From Anthoceros angustus (Eukaryota; Plantae; Anthocerotophyta): a stretch of DNA of 28,987 bases. The stretch covers positions 1 through 28,987 of the forward strand of contig VJWM01000372.1 in NCBI GenBank assembly GCA_010909165.1, written 5' to 3'. The position numbers and the translations under genes are program-made. The notes beneath the pieces were generated by a model. That model saw only the letters and a list, made by a program, of their open reading frames with translations. It did not search any database and was not told the DNA's origin. Positions 618 to 28,987 of this stretch are shown here, one piece after another; position 1 is the first letter of the stretch, and every line of letters begins with the position of its first letter.

Positions 618-794
618 TCACCTGAGCCGATTGTCCTCGACCTGCCGTCGCATGCGTCGGCGCGTTCCGTCAGTGTCCGCCAACCGCCGCCGCTCAGCCA
701 AGGCTTCGGCCGCCTTTTGGTCTCTGGCAAGATCTGACGCTTGCAGTGTCGGCCGAGCCTGAACAGGCGGGCGCGGTTTGAAGATATCGATCAT
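618..794 (-). CDS. Small basic hypothetical protein (MIDIFKPRPPVQARP...)
   Basis: AGGAG RBS before the ATG at 794, directly downstream of rpsU. Confidence 0.4.
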   Translation of the reverse strand: MIDIFKPRPPVQARPTLQASDLARDQKAAEALAERRRLADTDGTRRRMRRQVEDNRLR

Positions 795-862
795 TGGGCG
801 CTCCTGTTCGCTGGGCCGCCTGCCCGCTAGATAAGGGAGCCGCGGGGCGTCTCGTCGTGGAT

Positions 863-1079
863 TCATTTTGGGAGGTGCCGGGGAAGACCGTCCCGCTGCG
901 CCTGCTTCCGGGCCGCTTTGCGAGCGCGTCTTACGGCTTCCGCCTTTCTCTGACGCGCCTCCGAAGGCTTCTCGTAAGCGCGACGGGCCTTCAGTTCGCG
1001 AATGATCCTCACGCTGCATCTTCTTCTTGAGCACGCGCATCGCCTGCTCGATGTTGTTGTCTCTAACGAGAACCTGCAT
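863..1079 (-). CDS. rpsU: 30S ribosomal protein S21 (bS21), probably a paralogous copy; frameshifted as read
   Basis: [24 protein letters not shown] in one frame joins [41 protein letters not shown] in another, which is the alphaproteobacterial bS21 signature. AAGGA RBS. The true stop may lie nearer 827. Confidence 0.92.
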
Positions 1080-1126
1080 CTCAATCCTTCGCTCGGGAGC
1101 TTTCCCGTGTTGCAAATTTGGTTCGT

Positions 1127-7807: not shown

Positions 7808-9315
7808 TCAGGATTTCGGAACCTTGCCTGATAGCGCGGCGGCCGAGCAACGTTGAAACAGGGGCGGCTTTCGGTTACTCCGAGCCAGCGGCAGACGCCT
7901 CGACCGAAGTTTTACAATACGAAACGGCACCGCACCGTAACGGTCGGTCATTTGCAGATGCATCACTGTTGAAGCTACGTGAGCGACCAGAACTGGCGGT
8001 TCCTCATCCGGCCTCAGTTGTATTGGAACCTGAAATCTCAGCATCCGTTCCCGCGGTCCCCGATTTAGAACGACGGCACGCAAACGAGCCAAGTGCCTGG
8101 CTTCCGAATTAACCTCGAAATCCACCGTCTGGACGCAGCTGGAAGCGCGACCAGCATCGTTATGTCAATTGTTCCGTTCCAAGTTTGACCCGGGCGCCGA
8201 TCTGACACGGGAAGCGATTGCTTCAACACCAAGGGTCCAGCAGAGCGCTACGCGGCCAAAAACTGGAGACGGTAAGACCGTCTTCGAACGCGAACGGGCG
8301 GCGCGGCCTCGAAGAAGCCGACTCTGTTTGGCCAATGCTCGGACGATCCAGAAAGGACCTATCCTTCTTTCTTTGGTCTCATCTCACTTAGCGAGGCGAG
8401 CAACGCAAGCGGGCGACGGGCGGTGGCTTCAGCCTTTCTAGCAGCGAAGCGGGTACCGGCCGCTGGAGCCGATCGTGAACATAGCGCAAGGCCAGGGTGG
8501 CGGGAGCTTGCAGGCGGCAGTCCTTGACAAGGGTCTCGAATAGATTCCAGTCAACACCGCTGTCTATCGCAGCGGCAATATCAGCCAGCCAGTCGCTACT
8601 CTTATGGGCGTCGAGCGCACCGTGCGCGATCGCAATGGTCACGACGTCCGTCGCCGAAGGACCCACACCGGCACATATCCGAGTTTCGATGGCGAGGCGC
8701 GGTCCAGATCGCTGTCTTGTTCGCCGTTGAAGTGTAAGGCGGCCGGAAAGGTGAGTTGTGCAGATCGAGGTTTCCAAACCGACCGCGCACAAGGTTGATG
8801 CCACCGCTTTCTCCAGAAAAGTCCGGTGATAGAGAACTGTCCCAGATCCAGCGGGCTGCCAGCCTTCCGGGTGAGCAGGTCGAAAGCACGAGTCATGTCG
8901 CCGGAACGGACAACAATGTCGACGTCGTTCAACAAGCGTCCGCGCTGCTGGGTCGCTGGAGGCGATCCGGGCGGCGCCCTTGATGAGCAGCATGTCGATG
9001 GATGCCGATGCGAGCGCTCGCATTCCTTCCGGCGGCGGCGCCGATCGTGAGCTGGCTTCGCGACCAGTTCGCCCGCTCTATTCCTGCAATGCGCCCCAGC
9101 ATTGGGCTGTCAGGCGCGAAACTCGCTACGCGCAGCCAGACCGATCAATCGCATCTCGCCTGGGGTAAGATGGTCAAAATCCGCCTCGGCCTCGAATTGC
9201 CGCCAAGCTACTGCGGCGGTTGCGATGTCCTCGAGTGTTGCGGCGCGCAAAAGTCGGTCGAGCGATTGGTTCGGCCATGCCTTGCGAAAACGAAGCTGAG
9301 AAACCTGTCGCGCAT
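7808..9315 (-). CDS. Nucleotidyltransferase family protein (NTP_transf_5-like); frameshifted as read
   Basis: LASASIDMLLIKGAA, xxDVDIVV (DxD), NLDLH, IAHG...WLADIA and VDWNLF are motifs of the uncharacterised nucleotidyltransferase family. The ATG at 9315 overlaps the GT2 stop (TGATG). 7808-8125 is taken as the C-terminal extension. Confidence 0.8.
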
Positions 9316-10013
9316 CAGGAGGACGATCCCGAACTTTGCTTAACGGCCAGAGCCTTCCTGCGCTCGATGGCTTTATGAACTGCGATCAGATATCCCCTGC
9401 TGCGTTCCGCATCGAGCCCGCTGGACAGACTGCCAGCACGAATCCTCCGCATCGCCAGGATCTCCTCAACCATGCCATGTCGATGGCCGAGATCGAGGCT
9501 TCGCGCGAGCCAGTCGACCAACTCCCCGAGATAGCCGGGCAGGTCAACCATATCGCCGACCTCGCGAGCCGCATCGGTCCGAAAGACCAGGGTAGAGCGG
9601 GTCCACAGACGGCGAACCGCGCCTTGGCCCTCCGGGTCCGGCATCTCGCCATTCCGAAACAGTCTGGCCAATGTGAAAACTCCAGCCAAACCTGGATCAT
9701 CGTCTAGGGCGCGGAGCTGCCGTGCGATCTTGGTGGGAGCCAAAGATCGTCTGCATCGAGCGTGGCCACCAACGGTGTAGAGACGCTGTTGAAGCCTACC
9801 GTTGTGGCAGTGCCTGGACCTTGGTTTTTGGCTGATGACCGTAATCGGACCTGCGATCTCGGCGACGACTGACAATGTGGCGTCGGTAGAGCCGTCATCA
9901 ACGATGATGACCTCCTTCGCGCGGACCGTTTGGGCTAGGACAGACGCAACGGTGTCTTTGATCGTCAGCGCAGCATTGTACGCTGGGATAACCACTGAAT
10001 AAGCGCTGGTCAC
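9315..10013 (-). CDS. Glycosyltransferase family 2
   Basis: YSVVIPAYNAA, VIIVDDGSTD, NQGPG and ATLDADDLWLP. The GTG start at 10013 appears to overlap the previous gene's TGA. Confidence 0.88.
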   Translation of the reverse strand: MTSAYSVVIPAYNAALTIKDTVASVLAQTVRAKEVIIVDDGSTDATLSVVAEIAGPITVISQKPRSRHCHNGRLQQRLYTVGGHARCRRSLAPTKIARQLRALDDDPGLAGVFTLARLFRNGEMPDPEGQGAVRRLWTRSTLVFRTDAAREVGDMVDLPGYLGELVDWLARSLDLGHRHGMVEEILAMRRIRAGSLSSGLDAERSRGYLIAVHKAIERRKALAVKQSSGSSS

Positions 10014-10759
10014 CGCCCTTGGCCTTTTCGATTTCGTCTCGTCGCAGGAAAGGTCAGCGAACACGGAGGGAGCGCCGGCTTTCCGCTCATTCGGTTTCGG
10101 ACTGCCCATTTGAGACTGGCGAGCATGAACTCGCGTTGCATCTCCGGTACATTCAGCGTGACGTTCGATCGTGCCGGCGATAGTAAGCTGCCAAGCCATC
10201 GTCCAGCACAAGTTTGAATTCCTTTTCGACGACGCGAAGCACGAAATCTGTGTCACATCCTTGGCGAAAACTCTCGTCGAACGGGCTGACGCGTCTCACC
10301 ACTTCCGGTCGGTACATCGCCGATTGAAGATAAGGCCCACGAATTATTTTGGTCTCGCTCCCGACCTCAGGCGCGTCGCCCGACTTGTTGGCAATCGTGA
10401 ACAGCTCCATCAGACCGTATAGTGCATCGATAGTGGGATCGCTGAGGAGAAGGGATCGCTGACGCTCAATCCGCCCGGGATACGAAAGGTCATCTGCATC
10501 AAGAAAGGCGATGAACCGGCAGTCGGTTCGGACATTATCGATACCGGTGTTGCGTGCCGCAGCGATGCCCTTACGGGGTTCCGAAGTAGCCGGACCTCGT
10601 GAAAGTCCTGGGCCAGCATATTCACAATATCTCTCGTCTCATCAGTCGAGCCGTCATCGACCACAACGATGTCCAGGTTGACTGCTGCGCGCTCAGCGGG
10701 AGTGCGGCCTCGATAAAGCGGGCCGCATTGAAAGCCGGCATGATGACACTAACCGGCAT
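10010..10759 (-). CDS. Glycosyltransferase family 2; frameshifted as read
   Basis: VSVIMPAFNAARFI, VVDDGSTDET, AARNTG, FLDADD, FDESFRQGCDTDFVLR and YYRRH. Confidence 0.88.
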
Positions 10760-11831
10760 GGCCCGCTCCCGTGCAAGAAACGATCCTATCGCATCTGCGA
10801 TCTCGGCCGGGTCCTCCGACAGGATTACGCTGAAGGCTGGTAAGCGCTTTACCAAGGATGCAAAGAACCGAAAACCTTCAGACGCATCGCCCGAGCTGGA
10901 GGACCGCTGAAGGGTGCAAGCGCTAGAGCCGCGGTATGGCTAGCCACGGGCTCTATACTGGTGCGCTTTGCCCGAGCGATCCGTGGGATCAAAATTGCGC
11001 GGATTTCCATCCTGTCCTTGAAGGCATGTGGGCATCAGACTTGCGGCGTCAAACTCGACCTTGCCGTGCAAGTTCCGTTTCGCGCCGATCAAGTCTGTTG
11101 CTTGAATTCCTGCCCGACGAAGTCCGTCCTCATCTTGCTTAAAGGTCTTGAAGGCCGAATAGGCTGCCACCGCCGCACCTTGTTCGACGAGGACATAGTC
11201 GTCGCCGACGCTGTCAAGCCATTCATGAAGCCCGCTAGCGTAGTGCCAGATTTTCCCGACCCGCTCGGGCCGACGATCAGGCTCCGTTGATCCCAAGCGT
11301 AGCAGCGTGCGTTAGGCGCTTGCCAATCCTCGCCTGAGCCCAATGCACGAAGAGGCGCAGCGGCGATCCAAGCTCCCAGGGGAATGTCCAACGGTCCGGG
11401 CAATGTATGAACACCAACGGCGGCGCCACTATCGTAGAATTGCCAAGACGGAGCGTCGTGATGATAAAAGCCGCGCCTATCGCCGGCAGCCAGGATACGT
11501 TCGAATTCGCGACGAGAAACCCGATTCTTCGTCCCATATCGCTGGCGGGTCCCACTCTTCTGCTTCCGCATCCAGCGCGAAAATTTCTGCTGCTTGCTGG
11601 AAAGGCGCCTCACTGTGATGCTGGACAAGCATCGACTCACAAACCTCCGCAAGCCCCTTACTTGTAGAACCAAACCGTCATGTCGAGCCGCGCCAAGCTC
11701 AAGTCGCGCCGAATCAAGCGCTCTCTGGGAAGCGCTCGGCAGCCCTTAGTCGGTCGTTAGCGTAGGCAAGGAGATTGGCCGAGGATACCTTGAACGGGAC
11801 ATTCACTTGGTCGGTCCGTTGCCGCTGTCAT
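10749..11831 (-). CDS. HPr kinase-related serine kinase; frameshifted as read
   Basis: LTHAATLGING..LIVGPSGSGKSGTTL (conserved His plus Walker A) followed by VGDDYVLV (the DD motif of the HprK family). Confidence 0.82.
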
Positions 11832-12255
11832 ATGACTGAGGCCTCGGTGCAGGCCATCCAGCTTGCTCATCGACGTCATGAATGGGGTCGGCAAAGATAA
11901 GCTCCGCCAAATCATCGAAAATCTCGATCTTTGAGGTTCTCCGGTCCAACTCTCGCTCAAAGCGGCTGAGAGATTGGGTTCGCTACCTTCTTGCGGACGA
12001 ATTAGCTTCAGTTCAAGTAGCTTATCGATGAAACGGTTGGCCTCGTCACCCAACTCTGGCCGGTGTTGCCCGTCCTATCAAAGATGGCCTGCGGCGTTTG
12101 ACCTGCAAGCAGATTGTTCCAACGGTCGATGCGATACCACCGAGACTGAAATAACGACCATCCGACAAGTTCAATATGACAATCTGCCCGCCGAAATCTT
12201 CGGAAACGACGTCAGGCGCGCTAATCGCATATATTCTATCGGGCAGAACTGGCAT
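11803..12255 (-). CDS. PqqD-family / RiPP recognition element (RRE) protein with a C-terminal DPIHDVDxxxGWP tail; frameshifted as read
   Basis: PDVVSEDFGGQIVILNLSDGRYFSLGGIAS (RRE three-stranded sheet), ANRFIDKLLELKLI (last helix), then KIEIFDDLAELIFADPIHDVDEQAGWP. Confidence 0.82.
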
Positions 12256-14604: not shown

Positions 14605-14885
14605 ATGCTTGCACAGCCATTCTTGAAGCCAGTCCACGTATGGGGCGGACTTGGCTTTCCCAGGCGACTGAACACGGTTGCCGACGCCTGCCAGTTCGCG
14701 TCGGAGTGGGGCGGCAACAGTCCTGAGCAGCAGGCAGTCCGCGCCTGTAAGGCCGCACTCGCTGGCGAGATCGACACAGAAACCGCACGGGCGTGTTCAC
14801 CGCCTTCGCGAGGAGGAAAGACATTCTGGTCGAAGACGAGACGATCCCGTTCGTGGCGAAGAATTCGCGGGCACGTCACGTGTAA
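14605..14885 (+). CDS. DUF982 family protein, copy 1
   Basis: MLAQPFLKPVHVW..LGFPRRLNTVADA.QF..EW...AVRACKAALAGEIDTETAR..FTAFARRKDILVED is a typical rhizobial DUF982 pattern. Confidence 0.8.
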
Positions 14886-15320
14886 TAAAAGGGGCGTCAG
14901 CCCAATGGATGCCGCCCTTCGTTTTCTGGTCCAATGGATGGCTTCAGGAATCTTCATCATCACGCTGGCGGCCAGCCTGGCGTTGGCTGGCTACCTGCTC
15001 GCCGGGTGTTCGGCCTCATTCCATAGGCCTCAGCCCGGCCACCTTCTCACGTCTGATCGTATCTCGCCGCCGCTTGGCTCTCGAGATGATGCCGACAGCC
15101 AAGTGAGCCCACATCGCCAGCACGAGCACAACTCCACCGATCAGAATTGGGCGAATGACCTGCCATGGACATAGTGGTGAACCAGCGCTACTCGATCCAC
15201 GCTGCGGCAAGTAGCGCTGCAGCGGCTGTAAAATCCTCGATGCCCTAATTCATGCTGATCGCCCTGGTTCGATCTGGTTATTGTGCCGCAGTACGATCCA
15301 GCGCGCCAACCGAGAATCGC

Positions 15321-17246: not shown

Positions 17247-17526
17247 ATGCTTGCACAGCCATTCTTGAAGCCAGTCCACGTATGGGTCGGACTTGGCTTT
17301 CCCAGGCGACTGAACACGGTTGCCGACGCCTACCAGTTCGCGTCAGGTGGGGCGGCAACAGTCCTGAGCAGCGGGCAGCAGTCCGCGCCTGTAAGGCCAC
17401 ACTCGCTGGCGAGATCGACACAGAAACCGCACGGGGCGTGTTCACCGCCTTCGCGAGGAAAGACATTCTGGTCGAAGACGAGACGATCCGTTCGTGGCGA
17501 AGAATTCGCGGGCACGTCACGTCTGA
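17247..17526 (+). CDS. DUF982 family protein, copy 2
   Basis: AAGGAGG RBS. Near-identical in nucleotide sequence to 14605-14885. Confidence 0.82.
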
Positions 17527-17533
17527 GTTACCT

Positions 17534-17560
17534 AAGGCGCCGGACGCTGCGGCGCCCTTC
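17534..17560. terminator. GC-rich hairpin between convergent genes, possible terminator
   Basis: GGCGCCG (17536-17542) and CGGCGCC (17550-17556) form an inverted repeat just after the DUF982 stop. Confidence 0.45.
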
Positions 17561-17654
17561 AATTTGAGTTGAACCGAGACGTATGGGCACATCCGGGCGC
17601 TTCAGCTGCGGGCGCAGTGTAGTGATCAGTGCCACCACCTGCTTTCCGAATTTG

Positions 17655-18540
17655 CTATGGCGGCGGCATGATACGCGTCCGTCGGCCAAATCGAATGCGA
17701 TGCTCCACAACCCGGCCGTGGGGCGCTGACCCGTCGCTGGTCCAAGACTCGCATTGGTGCTGCAGCCTTATGAGGCTACCCGCAACGTCTAGCCGAACGC
17801 CAGGCCGCTTGCCGAAAACCCTGAGCACCATTGCAAGCTGATGCCTTGTCCAAGTCACTTGGACTATGGGTTGAGGCACGGCTCGGGCGGCGTACCGATA
17901 TGTACCTTCCGGTTGCGCGATGGCAACGAGATCACCGGTACAGTATCTGGGCACCGCACGCCGCAACATTGTGGCGATCGCATCTTCCATAAACGTGCGC
18001 ACGTCGCTCGCATTGCTGGCATCCGACATCGCCGCCTGAGCGATAATAGGGCCTGTGTCGAATTGATCGGTCATCTCGTGCAGCGTCATGCCGCCGTATT
18101 GTTCCCACGCATTGTCCAGCGCAATCCAATGTAAAGGTTTAGGGCCGTGGTAGTGCGGAAGCAGAGCAGGATGGAAATTCAGCAGCCCATGGGGAAATAC
18201 GGAACGTATGTGAGCAGGAATGAGGCGCGGAAACCCGAAGCAGATCCCGATATCCGGCCTGTCACGTTGAAGTTGCTCGCGAAGTTGTTCCCAATCTGGC
18301 GAGGACATGTTGATGAGACGGATATGGTTGCGGCGTAGCAACTTCAGAAGCGACCATCGAATTCTTAGCCAACGGAAGGGATGCCTTAGCGCCGTGGGCC
18401 AGCGCTGCCGATAAAACACGACGGCGGCCAAGTGATGTCCTTCTTCCAGCCATGCTTTGATTATCACCGACGCGGGGAAGATAACTCAAGAAACAGGATT
18501 GCCGACAATTTCCGGCTGGGCAACGTCGACTTTGCTCCAT
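17655..18540 (-). CDS. Formyltransferase (Fmt/ArnA N-terminal-like, N10-formyl-THF dependent)
   Basis: PDIGICFGFPRLIP, LLNFHPALLPHYHGPKPLHW and GMTLHEMTDQFDTGPIIAQ are Formyl_trans_N motifs. The start is placed at the ATG at 18540 across a frameshift. Confidence 0.85.
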
Positions 18541-18615: not shown

Positions 18616-18699
18616 ATCTCGTTGACGAAGCTTATGACCGGTGTCCCGGACTGAGCTGTGATGTATACATAACGCTCACTGCACATATCGAGGATGCGA

Positions 18700-18831
18700 A
18701 TGAAAAGAAGCTACGAAAAGCCCGTGTTTGTTCGTCGCCAGAAACTAAGCTGTATCACGGCTTTGAGCGAGGGCTCGTTAGAGCCAAAGGTTCCGACGAA
18801 GTTTGAGCTTTCCCAGCGGCTGCGTCGCTGA
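18700..18831 (+). CDS. Putative RiPP precursor with a lasso-type leader (MKRSYEKPVFVRRQKLSCITA-LSEGSLEPKVP...)
   Basis: GAGGA RBS 5 nt before the ATG. YxxPxF RRE-binding motif and an LSxITA leader end. Below the ORF-track length cutoff. One missing base would give ...KVPDEV* ending near 18806. Confidence 0.72.
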   Translation: MKRSYEKPVFVRRQKLSCITALSEGSLEPKVPTKFELSQRLRR

Positions 18832-18892
18832 GCAGCCCGCAAGCCGATTCTGCTGGTTGGCGTCGGCGAACCGCTGTTGGTTAGTTAGAGCT

Positions 18893-19358: not shown

Positions 19359-19717
19359 TCAGCCCAACGTAAACGGTCGCAAGTGATTTAGTCCACTCAT
19401 TCGCATATGGCCGAGACGCTTCTCACCCGAATAGATTTCCGACAACGGGAACATGCGCAACCGGCCGAACTGCTGCCCGGGCCTGCGATGCCGCTCGCAT
19501 CGTCTGTTAGGCTCGAAGCGCTTTATCGACTTCGGTGTCTTGAACACGAAAAGTGCCTGGCACTGCGCGCAACTCGATCGCCATAAGGCCAATTTGCTCA
19601 TGGCGCCGTCCTTCGGCGCTCATAGCGCTCGAAGCCGATGCATTCATAACGCTGGCCGTCGTACTCGCGGACCTTTCGACCTTTGCCTCGATCATCGACC
19701 CGCTCGATCACCTTCAT
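19359..19717 (-). CDS. Phage hypothetical protein with CxxC; frameshifted as read
   Basis: ATGA overlap with the upstream gene. Contains YDGQRYECIGFERYERR..GAMSKLALWRSSCAQCQALFVFKTP...PNRRCERHR. Confidence 0.5.
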
Positions 19718-22553
19718 GAGTTCGTCACCGGGCGCCGACGGTGATCTCGAGCGGGCGCCTTTCGTCCGCACCTGCCGTCTCCACCGATAGCGTCCATCAA
19801 CTCGTCATCATCGTCCAGCCAGTTGAATATCTGCGTACCGCGCACGCCGAATTTCTGCGTGATCATTTGGCGCTTGGCGGCGTAGTCGGCCGGATTGAAC
19901 TGCTCCAGCAGATCGGCCGCCAATTCCGGGTTGTTGAACGCCGCGCTGGCGAGTTCGTCGATGGCCCGGGCCTGGACCTTCTTCGATTTGTTGCGCAGCC
20001 ACGTCGACATCACGTCGACGACGGCGATCGTCGGCGACAACTGATGACGGCTCACGCTGCGAACGCGGGAAGCGATGCCGGTCGTCGTCAGGGACGGGTC
20101 CAGCTTGCCGGAGAGCGCTTGCGCGGTGCCGGAGGTGGGCGCCCGCGTGCGGATGCTGCCTTCGGCGCCAGCGAGTGCGCCGAACAGTTCCTTGATGTTG
20201 GCCAAGCCGTCGGGGTCGTCAGACCACAGTTCGTCTGCGACGGCGGCCACTTTCGGGTCGTCGAAGAAGTTTCGCTTCTTAATCCCAACGCTCGCCGCCG
20301 GCGGAATTGGGCGCGGAGAACTTCCTGGTCTTGACGAGTTCCCAGCGCCGAGCGGGCGTTGGCGCGGGCTTCCGGCGAGTTGCCTGCGGCCTCCAGCAGT
20401 TCGACTGTCGCCTGGCGGGGTTAGGGCCGGTCGTCAGATTACGCACCGCGTCGATAGTTGCCTCGTCGCCGTAGCGAAGATAGCTGGCCTGCGCCGAGCG
20501 GCCCGGCGTCGTCAGCCGACGTTGCGTCTCGGCGCTGGCGGTTTCGACACCGCCGCGGTATTCGCCGGCGGCGCGCAAGCGCGTCAGGCGGTCGCGAAGC
20601 TCGGGAACTGTCCCAGCAGGACGCCGCGCTGTTCCATGTAGCGGGTAAGCTGCTCAGGGCGCTCGGCGAGGCCGCGCGTTTGGATGTCGGACAGAACCTC
20701 ATCGGCCAGTGCGTCGCGGACGCGCGGATCGGTGCCGGCCTCGCGCAGCAACGCGTTAAGGTCGTTCAGATTGCCCTGGTCGGGCTGCGCGAAGCGGCTG
20801 GCCACCGCGCTGTCGTTCATGCGGTAGCCGCCGCCTTCGCGCGGGTGAAGCGTTTCTGCGATGCCGGTGCCGCGGCGTTCGAAGCGGTCGCCGACATCTC
20901 TGCGGATCGCTCGAGCGGCTTGGTATTGCTCGCGCAACTCGGGCGGCATGGCCTCGTCGAGGAAGGTGTCCGTCTGGTCGCGGAATTGCCGAGCGACACG
21001 GGCCTGCTGACGATTGCCAGCGGCCTCGGCGGTGCGGATGTCGTCCGACAGGCCGGAGCGCGTGCTGGTGATCTCACGCAGCGGGACCGTGGCGTCGGCA
21101 ACAACCTCGCCGGCATTATCGACCGGCAGGGGGTTGGTTTGGGATACCCGCTTCTGCCGGCAGGAAACGCTGGCGATCATTCAGCGGCAAAGGCGTTCGC
21201 GGTGCGGCCGAAACGCTCGGCAAGAGGCTGGATCGGAACTTGCGTCGGCTTCGTTGATCGGGGCGAACGCTTCCCTGCACGGTTGGCGGCGTCGTAGGAA
21301 TCCTGAAGCCCAGCACGCAAGGTCGATCCGCGGGCCGTGGCGTCGGCCAGTTGCGGCCGCGCGCCGCCTGCTGCTTCACCGAAGATCAGCCGCGCCACTT
21401 CCTCGGCGTCCGCTGCTTCGGCAAGCTGCGCGTCCCGATTGGCCGACAACGCAGCGCGGAAATGCGCGGGTCGCCGTCCGGCGAGATAGCATGCATGACA
21501 TCGGAGACGGCCGTTGCGTTGGCGACGCGGCGCGTGTTCGCCGCGCCGGGCGTCAGCATATCCTGGTTCTGCACCATCGTCATCAGGAGCGGATCCTGAG
21601 TGCGATCGCCGATGTTGGCGGTATAGCCGGAACGGCGCGCTCTACCGGCGACGGCTGGCGCAGCCGATCGGCCAGCGCTCGCGTGTCCACCGCGCCGGTA
21701 TCGGCGTATTGCGCGCCGAGATCGGTCGAGTTGTTGATGATGCGGTCGGCGACTTCCTACCGGCCACTTCGTCCATCAGCGCCGGCTTGTTGGTGGCAGT
21801 CGCATAGGCGTTGCGCACGGCCGACGCGAGGCTGTCGCCGACAGCCGTGAGTCCGGCGCCGCCGAGCGACCCCAGGAAATCGGACCAGAAATTGTCGCCG
21901 ACCTGCGGGTTACCGGCCGCCTCATTCGCGATGCCCGCACCGAGTCCGGCGCCAGTGGCGTACTGCACTTCACGCTGCGCAAGACCGACGGATTGGCAAC
22001 AGCGGGCTCGGCGAAGAACCGGGTCAAAGGGCCGGAACGCCGCACAGCGTCCGCATTCGCTCGGCCGCTACCAGCGAGCCGCCGAGTGGAACGGCCGTCG
22101 CGCCGATCTCACGGCCGACGCGACCGGCGATGCGCTGGAATGCGTCCTGCGGCACGACTTCTTCGCGGCCGGTGACTGTGCGACCGGCAGCAGCAGGAGC
22201 GCCGATAATGTCGTCGATCATCTCGGAGCCGAGAAGTGGGTACTCGCTGTCAAGACCGGCCAAGCCAAGGCCGGCGTTTACCAAGTCGACCGGAAGCCGA
22301 GAACGGACGCGACGCCGCCGCCCTGGTCCAGCATATGGGCCGCCGTGTTGTCGGCGTAATCAGCCGCGCCAAGCAAGCTCGTCAGCCACGACGATCGTCC
22401 CTGCTGCGCCGCCGGCACAGTAGGGGCCGCAGCAGCGGGCACTTCCGTAGCGGGTGCGGCGGGCTGCGACGACAGAATGCTTTCGACTTCGGCGTCAGAC
22501 GCGTCGTCGGGAACTTCGATGCGACGGCCTTCGAACTCGATGACGCGCGCCAT
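19714..22553 (-). CDS. Large putative virion internal / DNA-ejection protein (~940 codons); multiply frameshifted as read
   Basis: Starts MARVIEFEGRRIEVPDDASDAEVESIL, then Ala/Gly-rich helical segments continue over several frames to ...FNNPELAADLLEQFNPAD. Coupled to both neighbours by overlaps. Function inferred from composition and position. Confidence 0.6.
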
Positions 22554-23945
22554 TACTGCACCTTGACCAGTTTGCCGTCACGGCGCTCCCAGCGCTCGGG
22601 CGCAGCGCCACCATCCATCGTGGTCGAGGTGGTGCTGGCGGTGCGCTGCCGCCCACAGCGTCCACGCCGCCCTTCCTGGCGTTCCCCAGGATGGCTTCCT
22701 GGCTTTCGATCATCTTGATCGCCTGGTCGAGCCGGGCGAGCGACGACTGCTGGTTCGAAGTCATGCCCTCGAGGCCAAGCGCCGAGCGGGCGGTGCGGAT
22801 CATCTCGTTGGAGAGACGATCGGCGCCCTGCAGCTTCGCGTACTGGAAAGCCAGCATGTTCGACATGAGCTCAATCGCCGGGATGTTCTTATCGAACGAA
22901 CCCGCCAGATCCTGCTCTTCAAGGCCCTGCGCAATGCGCTTTGATAGCGTCGACGTTTCCGCCGAAATAGCGGCCCAGTTCGCCGCCCGTGGCGATGACG
23001 TTCTGAGCGGTGCCGCGCATCCAGCCGATCACCCCTGCGACGCCGGCGCAGTAGCGATCATGTCGCGAAGCTGTACGGCAACATCCTTTGCGACAGCGGC
23101 GTCGACAAGCTGTTTGTCGATGCGGTTTGTCGTCGACGCGCCAAGCACATCGTCTACCGCGCCCTGCGCCTGCGCCTTGAAGGTCTGCGTGCCCTGAGGC
23201 GGCGCCTGACGGGTCTGCGAATCGACCAGGCCCAGGGTCGGGTCGAATATGGCCGTTCCTGGCGACCGTCGGGCGCGCGGTAATTGACAACATCCGTGCT
23301 GCCGGCCGGTTTGTCGTATGGCGTCTGGCCGATCGCATCGGCGCGACTGACGATGCGCCCTTCTGCTGTTTGCACGCTCTCGACGTTGAGGTCGCTGCCG
23401 ACGATGGCGTTCTGCAGTTCCGGCGGAAGGCTTTCCAGTATCCCACCTTTGACTTCCGTCTCGGAGCGCGGCTTGAAGCCCATGCTCGAGCGCAGCGTGC
23501 GATCGACGCCGTACATCGACGCGATGTCCGCTGGGATCTCGGGGCGAACCTGGCCCTGGTCCAGCGGGTCGTAGAACTTCGTCAAGTTGTCCAACTGGTT
23601 CGTCTCGATCGCGCGGGCGTTGTCCGCAGCGTTGTTCGCGCGCGACGTGCTCGCCTGCGTGTCGTAGCCGTAGCGCTTCGTCGCGTCGTCCATGTCACGA
23701 GCGCCGAAGCCCTGCGTCGGAGCCCACGAGCCGGTCGCCGCACCCATGCGATCAAACGTGTCCTGATTGAAGTTCGGGTCGTTGATGTAATCGAACTGCG
23801 ATGCCAACCGCCGGCGCGCGGGCATCTGCCGTTGCCCAACCGGCTGCATCGGCGCCGCTCGGCGCTCGAACAGCGCCGAGAGATTGCTGGCGGCCTGTGC
23901 GAAGGCTGCGTTGTTGAAATAGCCGTTCGTCTTGATTGAGGGCAT
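22553..23945 (-). CDS. Putative virion internal / DNA-transfer protein (~460 codons); frameshifted as read
   Basis: GAGGT RBS. Runs MPSIKTNGYFNNAAFAQAASNLSALF ... ERRDGKLVKVQ*, with a TAATG overlap into the next gene. Confidence 0.6.
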
Positions 23946-23955
23946 GGCGACCTCG

Positions 23956-24380
23956 CTATCGCGACCGAACAGCGGATCGGGCGGCGGCTTGACCAGAGCT
24001 CCGGCCATACATTCGCGTCCATGCTTGATGAGATGCGCTCGGTGCAGTGTGATCGTCAGCTCGGCCTGAAAGATGAAAGCGTGATTCAGCGAAAAGCCGC
24101 GTTCGCGAGGCGCCATTCGTCACGAGGTCGTTGACCTGGCCCAGACCGAACCACACTTGCTCCGGCGTCAGCATGTTGGGGTGGCAGCCGTGACAATGGG
24201 ACAGGCAGCCCAAAGCTGCCGCGATATCGATCGACTGATTTCCGGGAATGCCGCCGGAACATCATCAACAAGAATTGCGGCTTTGATGATTTCCTGGGTC
24301 GCTAAGAGCGCACCACGAACAGCCTCGCCTGGCGCCGCTATGAGCTCGAGCATCCTTTGCGGTGACAAGGCAGGAATGGG
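23956..24380 (-). CDS. Hypothetical protein; frameshifted as read
   Basis: Protein-like segments SPQRMLELIAAPGEAVRGALLATQEIIKAAIL and MLTPEQVWFGLGQVNDLV lie in adjacent frames. Confidence 0.35.
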
Positions 24381-25089
24381 GATTTATGGAATGCGAACCG
24401 GTGACGGGCATAGAGCACTCTTCGGCCGGAACCCATGACGCATCATCGAGCCTTCCTCGACGTGAGACGTGCCTGATTGGCGGGTTCGTGATGGCGATTG
24501 TCGGAGGTTCCGACGGCGAGTGCAGCTGCCGAGGTCTGCGGATTTACCGGCAAGACTGAATGTATACGGCAATACGAATGGATGCAAGGAAAAAATGCCT
24601 ATCGCATTGATGGCGTTCGCGAGCGGCCAGCTGCCACTGATCGGCTCGCGACAGACGGATTTAAAGTTCCAGCGAGCCGCAGATTCCACGCGACCTCGAC
24701 GGCGCCGCGGGGCGATCAAGTTTAGTATCGGCAGGGGTCCGGCCACCCTCCAGCCGCGGGCGTGGCGGCGCGCCTGGGCAAGCCACGGCGCCAGCTCACG
24801 TCGGTCGGCAAAGGTCAGGCTGGCGCCACACCCTGTGGAGCTGGCAACAGACGTGCATGCGGGTGACGGCCTTCTGTAGCAGCGTCTCAATTGCACTTCA
24901 TCACCGAGTCAGTCCGCGCCGGCCGCCGCCGATAATGCCCGATTAAACGGCGTCGGGCGGGCCAGGACTAGATAACTCCTTCATAATACTGTTTACTTGG
25001 CTGATAGATCAGACACTTAGTGCGCGCGCGGTAGCGCTTTGCAAAGGGCTGATAACAGATCAAAATAGGACGATCGTCCACGTTACGCC

Positions 25090-25120
25090 AAAGAAAAGGC
25101 GCGCTTAGAAAGCGCGCCTT
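25090..25120 (-). terminator. Rho-independent terminator
   Basis: Perfect 11-bp stem AAGGCGCGCTT (25096-25106) / AAGCGCGCCTT (25110-25120), with a T-rich tail on the minus strand, 11 nt after the stop at 25132. Confidence 0.8.
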
Positions 25121-25131
25121 GCCGCCGTCCG

Positions 25132-25335
25132 TTACACGACGGCGTTGTACTCATCACATAGCGCCTGGAATTTCAGCGCGAGCTCTTCCGGTAGGATGCC
25201 GTCGACGAGGACGCGATCCTTGACCCTGGCGATGCCGCGAGCGATTGGGTCGTGCCAACTAATGATTTCCAGTTTGGCCGGCCGATCCTTGAGGGGCACT
25301 GGCTGGCGCGTTTTGAAGTCAATAACTTGTCCCAT
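25132..25335 (-). CDS. Small hypothetical protein (MGQVIDFKTRQPVPLKDRP...)
   Basis: Strong GAGGAG RBS, an intact 67-aa frame, and its own terminator. Confidence 0.65.
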   Translation of the reverse strand: MGQVIDFKTRQPVPLKDRPAKLEIISWHDPIARGIARVKDRVLVDGILPEELALKFQALCDEYNAVV

Positions 25336-25673
25336 TGCTGTTCTCCTCATGGTCCCGCGTTTCAAACGGGTAGCTGGGGTGAAACGTCCGACAGCGGCGG
25401 ACTCGCGGGATTTTGGGCATAAGCTTGACATGGCTGGCGCCCCGGCTGGTGATCGATTGCAGACTGTATGCGGCGTTTCAAGCCAGGCACAGATTTGCGC
25501 AACCTCAGAGTTTTGTCAAGTACCGTTGCATTTTTTCTTCCCCGCAAGCATCCGATCCGCCAATGTAAGTCGTCAGTCAGTAAAACGGACGTCGACTGAC
25601 AGAACGGACGCGGCATTGACTGTTGACTATTCTTGAGGATTGCGATGAACTCGCGGTACGGAGCGATGGGCAG

Positions 25674-25850
25674 GTGACTAGGTCAATCCCCTATCTGAAG
25701 CGGAATCCAAACGGCACCTACTACGTCCATTGGACGGAGGATCGCATCGGAAAACGCGTGACGACCAAAACGCGAGACGCCGATCGCGCGACCAGGTTCC
25801 TGGCGGACTGGATATACAAGTCGGGAATCGGCACCGATGACCGCTACCCA
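25674..25850 (+). pseudogene. Fragment resembling the N-terminal arm-binding region of a phage tyrosine integrase
   Basis: PYLKRNPNGTYYVHWTEDRIGKRVTTKTRDADRATRFLADW. No catalytic domain follows. Confidence 0.45.
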
Positions 25851-26169
25851 TCGTCAGACCGTCAGCGCCCTGGAAAACGAAGGGCTGAAGTGTCGGAAGA
25901 GGCCTCATACCGGAATTCATTTCGGAGCGCCGGGCTGCCGAATTGCTCGGCATTTCGCGGCGCCCATGGAATATCTCCGAGCTACCGGGCGCATCACCTA
26001 CTATAAATTCGGGCCGCCGCGGTACGACCGTAAGGACGTCGAGGAGTTCCGCGAGGCGGAAGCGAAAAGGCCGAGCTGGCGCAGTGGAAAGCGGATTACG
26101 CCGTCCGCGCCGCGGAGAAACGCGCGGCGCAGGAGGCAAAGAGGAACGACGCCCCTCTGTCGAACATGA
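25837..26169 (+). CDS. Excisionase-like helix-turn-helix DNA-binding protein; frameshifted as read
   Basis: ISERRAAELLGISRR + MEYLRATGRITYYKFGPPRYDRKDVEEF is an HTH_17/MerR-like Xis pattern. Confidence 0.65.
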   Translation: MTATHRQTVSALENEGLKCRKRPHTGIHFGAPGCRIARHFAAPMEYLRATGRITYYKFGPPRYDRKDVEEFREAEAKRPSWRSGKRITPSAPRRNARRRRQRGTTPLCRT

Positions 26170-26208
26170 AAACAAAATGATTAGGGCCGCGGCCTACGTT
26201 GCGTCGCG

Positions 26209-26533
26209 TCAATCGAATAGCGAGCCGCCCCGGTTTGGTCGTCGTGCTCGATTGCTTTTCGTGCCGCGAGGTCGGCCGCACTCGTCCAGCGCTTCGCTGA
26301 GCTCTTCCGGACTCATCTCGCTCGGCGGCTTCTGACTGCGGTTTGGCTTCTCGCCATAAGCCGTTAGCGCGCAACAGCGCGGCGCCTGCGGCGGACTTCG
26401 CCGGCGCGGCCGCCTTCGGATCCGCGCAGACCGCGATGAGCGCATCCACCGCGCTCTCGAGGCCTGTTGTGCGCAGCTTATGCATGACGCGCTCGGCGGT
26501 TTCGTATTCGATGTCCTTCTTAGGCTTGCCCAC
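26209..26533 (-). CDS. Hypothetical phage protein, small-terminase-like
   Basis: AAGGAA RBS and GTG start. AVDALIAVCADPKAAAPAKSAAGAALLRANG and a C-terminal SEMSPEELSEAL resemble TerS-like helical proteins. Confidence 0.45.
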
Positions 26534-27084
26534 GGCAGATTTCCTTTCGTTTGCGAGGAAGGTTGATCGCTTTCACGAATTCAGCCGAACACGCCCTTCC
26601 CTCGCGGATCGCGATCTGGATCTGGATTCGCAAAATGTCGACGCGCGCGTTGCGGTCCTGACGCGCCGCTGATCGGCGGCGCGGGCTTTCGTGCTGCCTG
26701 GCTTGTGGGTTTTCTGCCACTTATCGTAGGCGCGGCGCTTGTTGGCCGGCATCATCGCGACACGCTTCGCGCGCTTGTCGGCCGCGCGCTGCAAATCGCC
26801 GAGCTTGCGATTGAGTTTTTCATCGCGTCGGGCGCGTTCTTGTTCGGCCACCGCGGACGGTGCCAACCGTCGCCGGATGGGACGCGTCCGCCGTGCAGGT
26901 AACAGCGGCCGTTGCTCATTGCCAGTTGCTGACAAGGTTGGCCGTCGCGTTTTCGGCGCGCTCCACATTTCGGATGCTGGTGGCGGCCGCGTCGGTTCCA
27001 TCTTTGATGGCGGCGCGCGCAACGGCAATCTGTTGGGCAGCCGCGCCACCGATGCGGCCGTTTGTGTTGCGAGCGGTTCTTCAT
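26520..27084 (-). CDS. HGGxSTG-domain protein; frameshifted as read
   Basis: KCGARRKRDGQPCQQLAMSNGRCYLHGG matches the C-G-A...C...AM.NGRC.LHGG signature. Confidence 0.75.
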
Positions 27085-27204
27085 GGCAACATCCTGAAAA
27101 GGATGGGGTATCGCCCGAAAAGCTTCAGCGTTCCCAATTCCATCCGATTTCTCGCGACCCAAAACCGGAGACGGGAGGCGGCTGCGCAAGCGCGCCTCCC
27201 CGTA

Positions 27205-27365
27205 GGGGAACTTTGCGCAGAACTGAAGCGCAGCGCGCAAGCGCATGGACTTCAGCGCACTTTGCGCGCGGCTTTGCGCAGGCAAAATGCGCAAAGTGCT
27301 CGCGCGCAATGAAATCAATGGGTTACGCGGGACCCGAGCGCACTTTGCGCAGACTTTGCGCACCG
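27205..27365. repeat. Iteron-like CTTTGCGC array with an IHF-consensus site; putative replication origin
   Basis: CTTTGCGC at 27211, 27260, 27272, 27343 and 27354, inverted at 27289-27296. AATCAATGGGTTA (27313-27325) fits WATCAANNNNTTR. Confidence 0.6.
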
Positions 27366-27408
27366 TCTTCATTCCCGTCCTCACTCGAAAACCGATGCTG
27401 GAAATTCG

Positions 27409-28088
27409 TCAGACGTTTTGCAGGCAAACGACATACCCTTTTACCGGATGCCGCGAAGCCGACTTCCCAACAACGTCCTGCCGGATGATTCCTTTGCGCT
27501 CGAGCCGTGCAACGGCCGCGCCAATCTCTTCGATCGAATACGCCTGCAGTTCCTCTGGTATGCGCCGCTTCAAAATCTTCGGAGCGTAGTGCGCGCTGTT
27601 CGGCGCCGGCGAAAGCGCGATGCCGACGCATTCGTTAAGCGCCGCCAGCGTGGCGGCCTCAGCAGCATCGTCCAAAGTCGGGATCGATGTGGCAGGCCAT
27701 CCAGTCGCCGTGTCTGCCGCGGGTACTTTCCGGCGACAACCTCGAAGGCGCCACGCGACCATTTGATTTTGAGCAGCGAACCCTTGGGACCGTAGTTCAA
27801 TTTCATGCCTTCGAGCTCGCGGATGCTTCCACGCTCGGCTCGGTCCGGATGGCGAAGATACAGCCGCGATCGAACGGCGTTGCTCCACGCCGTCGAGCCT
27901 GACGTGCCGGTGCCGCTGTTCTTGCCGGCAACTGATGGGTGTCCGAGCGCGATCACGCTACCGCCGAACGAAGCAGCCAAGCCACCCAGGCAAACCTTCA
28001 CAAAGGTGACCTGAGTGCGGTTGATCTCATCGCCGACGAACACATCGGAGAGCGTGTCGATGACCACCACATCGGCGCCGAAGGTCAC
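27409..28088 (-). CDS. RecA-family replicative helicase (RSF1010 RepA / AAA_25-like), C-terminal part only
   Basis: VVVIDTLSDVF.GDEINRTQV (Walker B), IALGHPS and SGSTAWSNAVRSRLYL. Walker A and the N-terminus are missing because the frame breaks at about 28090. Confidence 0.8.
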
Positions 28089-28987
28089 TGCGTCTTAAGA
28101 CATGATCCTAAAATGGAACCACATATGTTATGTATTAGGAGCGGACGCGGCGTCACGGCGAAACGATTGGCGTTAGCGCGAACCGTTCTAGGCCCGTGCG
28201 CCGAATGCGTCTGGCGTAAAGGCGGCGAGTGGGCGGGGCGGTGGCAAATTTTCTGCAGACCGAGAGGTGGGGCAGTGCATTGGTCGTAAAGTTGTTGCTC
28301 GGGGTACCCGGCTTATAGTTCTTTTTTCTCTTGAGGATGAAAAAATATAGGTCTTTTTACTTTGGGACTTCACCTTCTTATCAAAGTTCTATCTCGGAGG
28401 AATTGTATCGAGACCACGACATCCAAAGCCACAAACTTCTTTCTTACACTATTCACAGGATGGCGGGCGACAACTGCGTGTGGCGGAATATGGTAATTTA
28501 GAAATTTTCTAATTTTGTTTGCACTCGATAGATGCAGGATACAAACCTTAATTGTATATTGACTCGTGCTCGTGTCATGGTGACCGTTTATTGTTTAGCA
28601 CACTGTCGAACCTGTTGGTAGGAAAGCAGAATGGCGTTGATCGATAAGCGTGATCAGACATCACGCATAAAAAATTTCACAGGACAACATGCATAACGGC
28701 TTATTAGGCTAGAGGCGGTATATATAGAATTTGTCGGTGATCGACCTGTCGACGAGGTTGCCAACCTTGACAAAAATTGTAAGAAATATGGGTACATAAC
28801 CAGCTCTGAGGCAATTGACTCCTAATGATTGGCTGCGGGCTCTCTCACCTCGGCTTCGGCAACTATGGACGTAAAAGCGCAAACTCTAAACACAGCCACA
28901 TCTGCGCATGGTCAACCCACATGGCGGAGGAACAACATTATCTTGATTTCATGGTCCAATGACTTAACCTTACCTTCGCTCTTTTCT

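Follow-up and report, generated by a model that had tools for sequence, protein, structure and literature searches.

Does the short open reading frame (ORF) at positions 18700-18831 of contig VJWM01000372.1, a stretch of 28,987 nucleotides (nt) in the Anthoceros angustus assembly GCA_010909165.1, encode the precursor of a modified peptide, and if it does, which enzymes would mature that peptide? A preliminary description of the contig, which we analyzed over its full length and refer to as the window, had proposed an unannotated precursor gene with a lasso-type leader and an atypical core, and had named as its partner an operon some 6.4 kb away encoding a kinase and a recognition element (RRE) of the kind that serves ribosomally synthesized and posttranslationally modified peptides (RiPPs). 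We show here that the ORF is a genuine precursor-peptide gene belonging to a family centered on Mesorhizobium, and that its relatives adjoin a different set of enzymes. Overall, the reading that we prefer, at a probability of about 0.62, is that this gene belongs to a predicted pathway to linear, phosphate-decorated peptides, the enzymes of which, a formyltransferase excepted, would, in the organism carrying the window, be encoded elsewhere or be replaced by a divergent cluster.

Read directly on the forward strand, the ORF runs from ATG at 18700 to TGA at 18829-18831, and its 43 residues are identical to those given in the preliminary description, as is the Shine-Dalgarno-like GAGGA (18690-18694, forward strand) that precedes the start codon with a 5-nt spacer. 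A second, in-frame ATG lies upstream at 18694; in the alignment, the relatives all start at the Met-Lys-Lys/Arg equivalent to 18700. The first 21 codons (18700-18762, forward strand) encode the leader, MKRSYEKPVFVRRQKLSCITA, in which Y5 and P8 form a YxxP motif predicted to bind an RRE. The ORF lies within a 233-nt gap beside a divergent gene of the formyltransferase family. A leader profile was built from 186 leaders from other genomes, the window ORF being left out, and was searched against 905 six-frame segments of the window. The ORF scored 45 bits (E 3e-13), and the runner-up segment reached E 0.23. The pattern [YW]xxPx[LIVFA], no more than 12 residues after Met in an open frame, is found at two places in the window, one of them being the ORF, which is the sole credible YxxP leader within these 29 kb.

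These data bear on the simplest objection, that the ORF arose by chance in an intergenic gap. In line with that objection, the single sequence is unmatched in two very large protein searches: a word-indexed search with the 43-residue peptide alone gave no candidate, and none was found at E ≤0.001 among 1.84 billion representatives. The peptide likewise has no match in Pfam or NCBIfam. The single-sequence searches were empty because the query has only 43 residues and small ORFs are often uncalled. Chance does not explain the leave-one-out profile match, the conserved site beside a formyltransferase orthologue, or the ribosome-binding site, which together establish that the gene is real, and we reject a chance ORF, on the E value of that profile match, as having a negligible probability. 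An Rfam scan of the whole window gave no match, nor did a megablast search of 10.5-20.5 kb against plasmids.

The family was reached through the neighboring formyltransferase, homologues of which adjoin small ORFs with the same leader at four loci: L001, a Mesorhizobium genome; L003 and L087, metagenome contigs; and L004, a Logan contig with three tandem copies. A profile of the formyltransferase-adjacent peptides led to 11 small proteins, two of which (QKC99591.1 and TPN00002.1) are named "putative RiPP precursor" by NCBI. The family is thus already labeled in GenBank, and the window gene is a new member of it. A genome scan for precursors, in which each species was represented by a single genome, yielded 119 confirmed matches, and 80 loci were kept, 77 of them titled Mesorhizobium and the remaining three consisting of one Aquibium and two metagenome-assembled genomes titled alphaproteobacterial or Rhizobiaceae. 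A six-frame profile scan of all loci then gave 196 peptides in 84 loci, of which 187 are distinct.

The family leader has 21 residues with the pattern MKKxYxKPxLxxRxxLSxxTA and, more fully, the consensus MKKTYEKPVLVKRxKLSAVTA, from which the window leader departs at K3R, L10F, and A18C. In a 15-sequence alignment M1, K2, Y5, P8, and A21 are invariant, and among the 187 relatives 68% have Thr and 30% have Val at position -2, and 95% have Ala at position -1, in agreement with the lasso-type leader previously proposed. Codon-position entropy across the 187 leaders is 27.3 at third positions, about twice the values at first (13.6) and second (12.9) positions; ATG is the start codon of 169 members, and a Shine-Dalgarno-like 4-mer stands at -16 to -4 in 162. 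On these three counts, the family ORFs are judged to be translated genes whose leader is under purifying selection.

Behind this fixed leader the cores are hypervariable. Statistics on 183 cores showed lengths of 6-21 residues (median 9) and a composition rich in Pro, Ser, Gly, Val, and Ala that is nearly uncharged, with neither Asp nor Glu in 139 (76%). Ser is present in 98% of the cores. Its occurrence at core position 5 (56%; 83% have Ser or Thr at positions 4-6) is the sole recurrent core feature, which makes the earlier suggestion of a core Ser as acceptor a sensible one. Three members have a further domain: in L053 (3038-3349, reverse strand), L065 (18735-19046, reverse strand), and L070 (5802-6113, forward strand), the family leader and a core of about 10 residues are fused to a Peptidase_S74 domain (Pfam E 1e-9 in L070 and 3e-12 in L053, to which the L065 sequence is identical). 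This is a self-cleaving intramolecular-chaperone domain, and its cleavage might set the C-terminus of the fused core.

The C-terminus of the window peptide itself has to be read in the light of the contig's quality. The window is gene-dense, has about 59% G+C, and is rhizobial in content, and on these grounds the contig is a bacterial (rhizobia-like) passenger inside a plant assembly. Nearly all of its genes are split across frames, the longest ORF having 320 residues. Short-read contigs from a run holding window DNA cover about 4 kb of the window at a depth of about 2.5. In the eight pieces listed, they differ from the window by nine insertions, with no deletions over the approximately 4 kb and no substitutions. 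Since there are only insertions and no substitutions, the differences represent bases dropped by the long-read assembly, at about one per 450 nt, and the frameshifted genes are probably assembly artifacts rather than pseudogenes or the mark of another strain. When the read-supported insertions were placed into 15.8-17.65 kb, long ORFs were not clearly restored, because read coverage is patchy. A ribosomal protein S21-like gene (618-1115, reverse strand), which loses its frame after the first 24 residues, fits the same explanation. Two DUF982 copies (14605-14900 and 17247-17572), 2.64 kb apart and 98% identical over aligned blocks, differ by short insertions and deletions in runs of G or C, and the reading frame is broken in both copies, at different positions. 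Neither the gene models of the window nor its apparent pseudogenes are therefore to be accepted as they stand.

As assembled, the core of the window peptide is LSEGSLEPKVPTKFELSQRLRR, 22 residues followed by the stop codon (18763-18831, forward strand). It is longer than the core of any relative, it holds three Arg residues, and no family core has two or more. A base missing from the assembly has probably corrupted the sequence beyond P32. If one base is restored between 18795 and 18796, CCG ACG becomes CCG GAC and the frame continues as K-V-P-D-E-V to a TGA at 18804-18806, which gives a 35-residue peptide with the 14-residue core LSEGSLEPKVPDEV (18763-18806, forward strand); this is the alternative frame that the preliminary description had pointed out. 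The nearest relative, the L004 peptide, ends in ...DLKVPD before its stop codon and has the codons AAG GTT CC. in common with the window. We consider it quite probable that the 35-residue reading gives the true C-terminus and that the assembly is one base short, since this contig tends to drop bases. In a metagenome scan, relatives were at 48% or less, too distant to settle the frame. The core begins with Leu and has Glu at position 7. Ser stands at position 5, Ser26 of the peptide (codon 18775-18777, forward strand), a candidate modification site that was invariant in the first six-sequence alignment.

Which enzymes accompany the family is best seen in ten fetched loci in which a PqqD-type RRE (B1), a Transglut_core3 protein (B2), and an HprK-like protein are grouped together; in most of these loci a formyltransferase and an NTP_transf_5 protein are encoded as well. 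Of the ten, seven belong to the 84 precursor loci, and a precursor lies alongside the enzymes in L001, L003, L019, L027, L033, and L080. No precursor was found within 10 kb of the B1/B2/kinase locus L002, and none was seen in L085, L086, or L089, enzyme loci that came from the formyltransferase scan. The B1/B2/kinase operon directly follows the precursor in L001, L003, L019, L027, and L033. The L019 cluster is compact, with precursor, B1, B2, and kinase genes on one strand and the formyltransferase and NTP_transf_5 genes convergent to them, and is flanked by an acetyl-CoA synthetase gene on one side and by genes for Dak1 and a phosphoenolpyruvate-utilizing enzyme on the other. Among solved structures, its RRE is closest to two lasso B1 proteins, TfuB1 (E 1e-5) and TbiB1. 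The Transglut_core3 protein scores 56 bits on the NCBIfam lasso B2 model, above its cut-off. The HprK-like P-loop protein, of about 330 residues, has Hpr_kinase_C matches at E 1e-4 to 1e-5 and weakly matches the HprK_rel_A, HprK_rel_B, and ScmC models as well. A cyclase of the Asn-synthase type was absent from the L001 and L002 Pfam tables (10 kb on either side), from the scanned L019 ORFs, and from the scanned ORFs of the window. In a second, different type of cluster, a distant one on metagenome contig Ga0351945_1029 (L134:1-7200), two related leaders (MKKEYEKPELIVYEDLSDVT...) are divergent from a formyltransferase gene, followed by genes for DUF362, a Transglut_core3 (B2) protein, and a B12-binding radical SAM enzyme, another radical SAM enzyme gene lying upstream; B2 and formyltransferase thus co-occur there too.

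Of this enzyme set, only the formyltransferase adjoins the window ORF. Its gene (17655-18467, reverse strand; Pfam Formyl_trans_N E 1.4e-18) is divergent from the ORF and 233 nt away, and its product is 48-59% identical to the homologues adjoining family precursors in L001, L003, and L004. An orthologue is divergent beside the precursors in these three loci and in L087, and a related one is on the same strand in L088. The exact sequence is not on record, and a related-locus search with the formyltransferase alone gave no relative. Among solved proteins, the formyltransferase is most closely related to the formyltransferase domain of ArnA and to a GDP-perosamine formyltransferase, with Met-tRNA formyltransferases ranking behind, and in L001-L003, L085, and L086 the gene stands beside genes for UDP-glucose dehydrogenase and a member of the epimerase/dehydratase family. 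The ArnA-like relatives and these neighbors make it somewhat more likely that the enzyme supplies a formamido-sugar donor than that it N-formylates the peptide directly. N-formylation is also possible, because the scanned ORFs of L019 and L134 include no sugar genes.

From these gene neighborhoods and from characterized homologues, a pathway can be proposed. The small PqqD-type RRE, of lasso B1 type, would bind the YxxP of the leader through Tyr5 and Pro8, and the HprK-like kinase would phosphorylate a core Ser, which in the window peptide would most likely be Ser26. The NTP_transf_5 protein may then add a sugar onto the phosphate, as PsmN does in pseudomycoidin. The lasso-type B2 cysteine peptidase would cleave after Thr20-Ala21, and the formyltransferase would either supply a formamido-sugar donor or formylate the new N-terminus. 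There being no macrolactam cyclase, the product would be linear. In the window organism, the B1/B2/kinase set would be encoded elsewhere in the genome or be functionally replaced by the cluster at 8.4-12.3 kb described below.

A linear product, rather than a lasso, is suggested by the lack of a cyclase in the clusters examined, by the 139 cores free of acidic residues, and by the finding that only 1 of the 183 cores fits minimal lasso rules, which also agrees with the atypical core of the preliminary description. For the window peptide to be a true lasso precursor, with its cyclase encoded elsewhere, it would have to form a ring between Leu1 and Glu7 of the core. The leader is of lasso type, with exact YxxPx(L/F)...Tx spacing, Glu is indeed present at core position 7, and the L003 relative matches the NCBIfam lasso_cyano model at a subthreshold E 5e-4. 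However, the core starts with Leu, many family cores are only 6-9 residues long, no cyclase was found in the clusters examined, and three-quarters of the family cores have no ring-closing residue, so that we hold a lasso product to be very unlikely.

A more ambitious proposal, which we put forward tentatively and at somewhat less than even odds, is that this family and its B1/B2/HprK-like/NTP_transf_5/formyltransferase set make up a class of alphaproteobacterial RiPPs that has not been described before. In each genus, precursors from dozens of dispersed, tandemly amplified genes would be trimmed to linear peptides of 6-15 residues, with a phosphate-linked decoration, possibly a formamido sugar, on the conserved Ser, or an N-formyl cap. 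Such a system would be a lasso pathway in which the cyclase was either lost or never acquired, and it would run in parallel with, yet independently of, that of the linear polyphosphorylated peptides (LPPs) of Bacillota.

Several observations weigh against our preferred account of the window gene as part of such a pathway. Of the 84 precursor loci, only 7 have B1, B2, and kinase genes no more than 10 kb from a precursor, and tblastn and profile scans found no PqqD, B2, or kinase gene downstream of 18831 in the window. The Thr-Ala cleavage site is assumed by analogy, and 30% of the members have Val at -2. The one-base correction of the core was made by comparison, the short-read contigs barely spanning 18665-18855 (depth 0.36), and the corrected 14-residue core, although within the family length range, is unusually acidic for the family. 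None of the window DNA is present in the one possible RNA run.

The distance between precursor and enzymes is, however, normal for the family. In 77 of the 84 loci, the precursor arrays are remote from the enzymes and occupy conserved chromosomal sites beside housekeeping genes, so that maturation in trans would be the rule, and enzymes elsewhere in the genome are a plausible arrangement for the window organism as well. Two to five or more precursor copies, mostly in tandem, are present in 56 of the 84 loci. The conserved neighbors of the Mesorhizobium arrays are mostly syntenic housekeeping genes (Ku, Exo_endo_phos, Abhydrolase_11, TPR) and not pathway enzymes. Two other genes also recur near the arrays: in 24 Mesorhizobium loci a gene for a 517-residue WD40-repeat protein is divergent from the array at about 335 nt (e.g., L040:3610-5163), and 27 loci have, on the opposite strand and some 430 nt downstream, a gene for a protein of about 270 residues without a Pfam match (e.g., L048:10892-11701).

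This normal separation also bears on whether the window gene might be a stranded copy, (near-)intact but without maturation because its downstream B1/B2/kinase operon was lost by rearrangement or insertion past 18.83 kb. Such a loss would account for the fact that synteny of the window with its relatives stops at the stop codon of the precursor, in the very place where the operon follows directly in five loci, and that a G+C-richer stretch with weak phage-type matches begins at 19.7 kb. Besides the general separation of precursors from enzymes, exemplified by a solitary copy flanked by housekeeping genes in L165, what argues for a working gene is that the leader is fully conserved and that the ribosome-binding site and start codon are in place. 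We therefore regard a stranded copy as unlikely. The stretch in question (19700-28100) has a G+C content of up to 0.63-0.68 and includes weak matches to a primase/helicase-like protein (27573-28088) and to phrog_5880 (20587-21180), and it may be a mobile element starting just past the end of synteny with the relatives.

The preferred account allows, as said, that the usual enzymes are functionally replaced by a cluster at 8.4-12.3 kb, and this is the operon to which the preliminary description had assigned the peptide. The cluster consists of a PqqD-like RRE gene split over two frames (11757-12255, reverse strand); a gene, split by frame breaks, for a P-loop protein (GPSGSGKS) that is probably HprK/ScmC-like (10940-11673, reverse strand); and, on the same strand, two genes for family 2 glycosyltransferases and the C-terminal part of an NTP_transf_5 gene (8388-10855, reverse strand; Pfam Glycos_transf_2 E 5e-16 and NTP_transf_5 E 1.7e-5, the latter under the Pfam cut-off). 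It thus has the three functional types of the family, an RRE, an HprK/ScmC-like P-loop protein, and an NTP_transf_5 protein. The RRE fragment weakly resembles lasso B1 proteins, with a weak match to NCBIfam lasso_PqqD_Bac (E 0.002) and matches at E 0.05-0.07 to solved lasso B1 proteins. Atlas look-alikes of the P-loop protein include clusters with ScmC or Hpr_kinase_C, which we take as a lead only.

If the window peptide were the substrate of this operon, phosphate and/or sugar would be added to its Ser residues by a system with no B2 peptidase of its own, and the operon would find in the ORF the one credible YxxP leader of the window; LPP clusters are likewise embedded among glycosyltransferase genes. 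Yet the window RRE has no match to the profile of the cognate PqqD of the family, and the P-loop protein matches the cognate kinase profile only marginally and over the P-loop only (E 0.009). Its assignment as a kinase is not confirmed by Pfam or NCBIfam, neither of which gave an Hpr_kinase_C match. A tblastn search of plasmids with the kinase-like piece gave no match, and scans of the window found no peptidase for the cluster. None of the other 83 precursor loci has homologues of the window versions of these genes within 10 kb. The 6.4 kb between the ORF and the operon, which are on opposite strands, hold the two DUF982 genes and unrelated ORFs. A substrate link is possible on grounds of proximity, but the partnership is not supported in the form originally proposed, and we consider it doubtful that this operon acts on the peptide.

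One further feature stands near the gene, a perfect 10-bp palindrome, ATGTATACAT, read directly at 18661-18670 (neither strand being assigned), 30 nt upstream of the start codon; it is a possible candidate operator.

An unannotated ORF of 43 codons thus gives entry to a large, uncharacterized peptide family of plant-associated rhizobia, which counts no fewer than 187 distinct precursors, combines a fixed leader with extremely diverse cores, and comes with a compact set of about five enzyme genes that could be expressed as is. The window copy itself sits on an error-rich contaminant contig, with the usual enzymes not adjacent. If the proposed pathway is correct, cyclase-less, phosphate-decorated linear peptides would no longer be confined to Bacillota, to which all reports of them have so far been limited, the lasso B1/B2 leader machinery would be at work on a product that is not a lasso, and a testable role could be assigned to the NTP_transf_5 and formyltransferase partners. 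In the literature searched, which excludes many subscription journals, we found neither the family nor its enzymes described, and met with no account of a cyclase-less pathway that depends on B2 or of clusters of this kind that include a formyltransferase.

How the family relates to systems already described can be judged from four comparisons. In the leader, the likeness is to lasso peptides, in which, as is established (PMC10368454), split B1/B2 proteins recognize YxxP leaders and cut after Thr-x or Ile-x. The window leader matches the YxxPxL(x3)G(x5)T-x spacing exactly at Y5, P8, F10 (for Leu), Q14 (for Gly), and T20-A21. Lasso cores differ in starting with Gly, Ala, Ser, or Cys and in having Asp or Glu at positions 7-9 followed by a tail, whereas the window core starts with Leu and has Glu7. 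The two labeled Mesorhizobium proteins, QKC99591.1 and TPN00002.1, known by their NCBI labels only, have the same 21-residue leader and a 7-residue core with Ser at position 5, from which the window copy differs by K3R, L10F, and its acidic core.

Among predicted systems, HprK-related kinases A and B and ScmC/ScmD of the SynChlorMet cassette (NCBIfam TIGR04352, TIGR04355, TIGR04249, and TIGR04248) are similar in pairing a chaperone of the PqqD family with an HprK-like P-loop protein and in being predicted to act on peptides. The L001 kinase matches all three kinase models weakly, at 20-30 bits against curated cut-offs of 125-200. To our knowledge, these systems are without a B2 peptidase, and we know of no described precursor of the present kind for them.

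Paeninodin and pseudomycoidin, with PadeK and with PsmK and PsmN, respectively, share with the family the split B1/B2 proteins, an HprK-like kinase acting on Ser, a protein of the NTP-transferase family, and the lasso YxxP...T-x layout of the leader. In pseudomycoidin biosynthesis, a Ser in the precursor is phosphorylated by PsmK, and addition of a hexose to the phosphate requires PsmN, a member of the NTP-transferase family (PMC6993621). The two pathways differ in that their peptides are cyclized by a C protein and phosphorylated on a C-terminal Ser, whereas the family is without a cyclase, most of its cores could not form a ring, and the conserved Ser of its cores is an internal residue close to the N-terminal end.

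The closest characterized analogue of the family is the LPPs of Bacillota. These are cyclase-less linear polyphosphorylated peptides in which LppK polyphosphorylates Ser3 of the core; their clusters sit in polysaccharide loci, their precursors have 35-200 residues, with a core of 45 residues in the sole characterized one, and the family is stated to be restricted to Bacillota (Popov et al., Nat Commun 2026, PMC13381572). Shared with the LPPs are a ribosomal precursor with a YxxP leader, a discrete lasso-related RRE, a kinase of the HprK-like kind, an NTP transferase, and the lack of a cyclase. These enzymes are all found in the relatives L001, L003, L019, L027, L033, and L080, while the window has only the divergent set 6.4 kb off. 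The modified Ser is near the start of the core in the LPPs (Ser3), and sequence conservation points to a similar place, about Ser5, for the predicted modification in the family. The polysaccharide setting is shared as well, as judged by the gene context of L001-L003. There are also clear differences. The Mesorhizobium family is alphaproteobacterial, has a lasso B2 (Transglut_core3) peptidase and an added formyltransferase, and has far shorter cores, of 6-21 residues. The LPPs have an SpI-like (SipW-type) leader peptidase, LppS, and an MsbA-like exporter, whereas signal-peptidase and ABC-exporter families are absent from the L001 and L002 Pfam tables and from the scanned L019 ORFs. Of the LPP leader YxxPxVLxHQxIxFETxxS, the window leader shares only YxxPx(V/L/F), the rest reading VRRQKLSCITA. 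Overall, the system is best viewed as a set of putative LPP-like, linear relatives of the phosphorylated lasso peptides.

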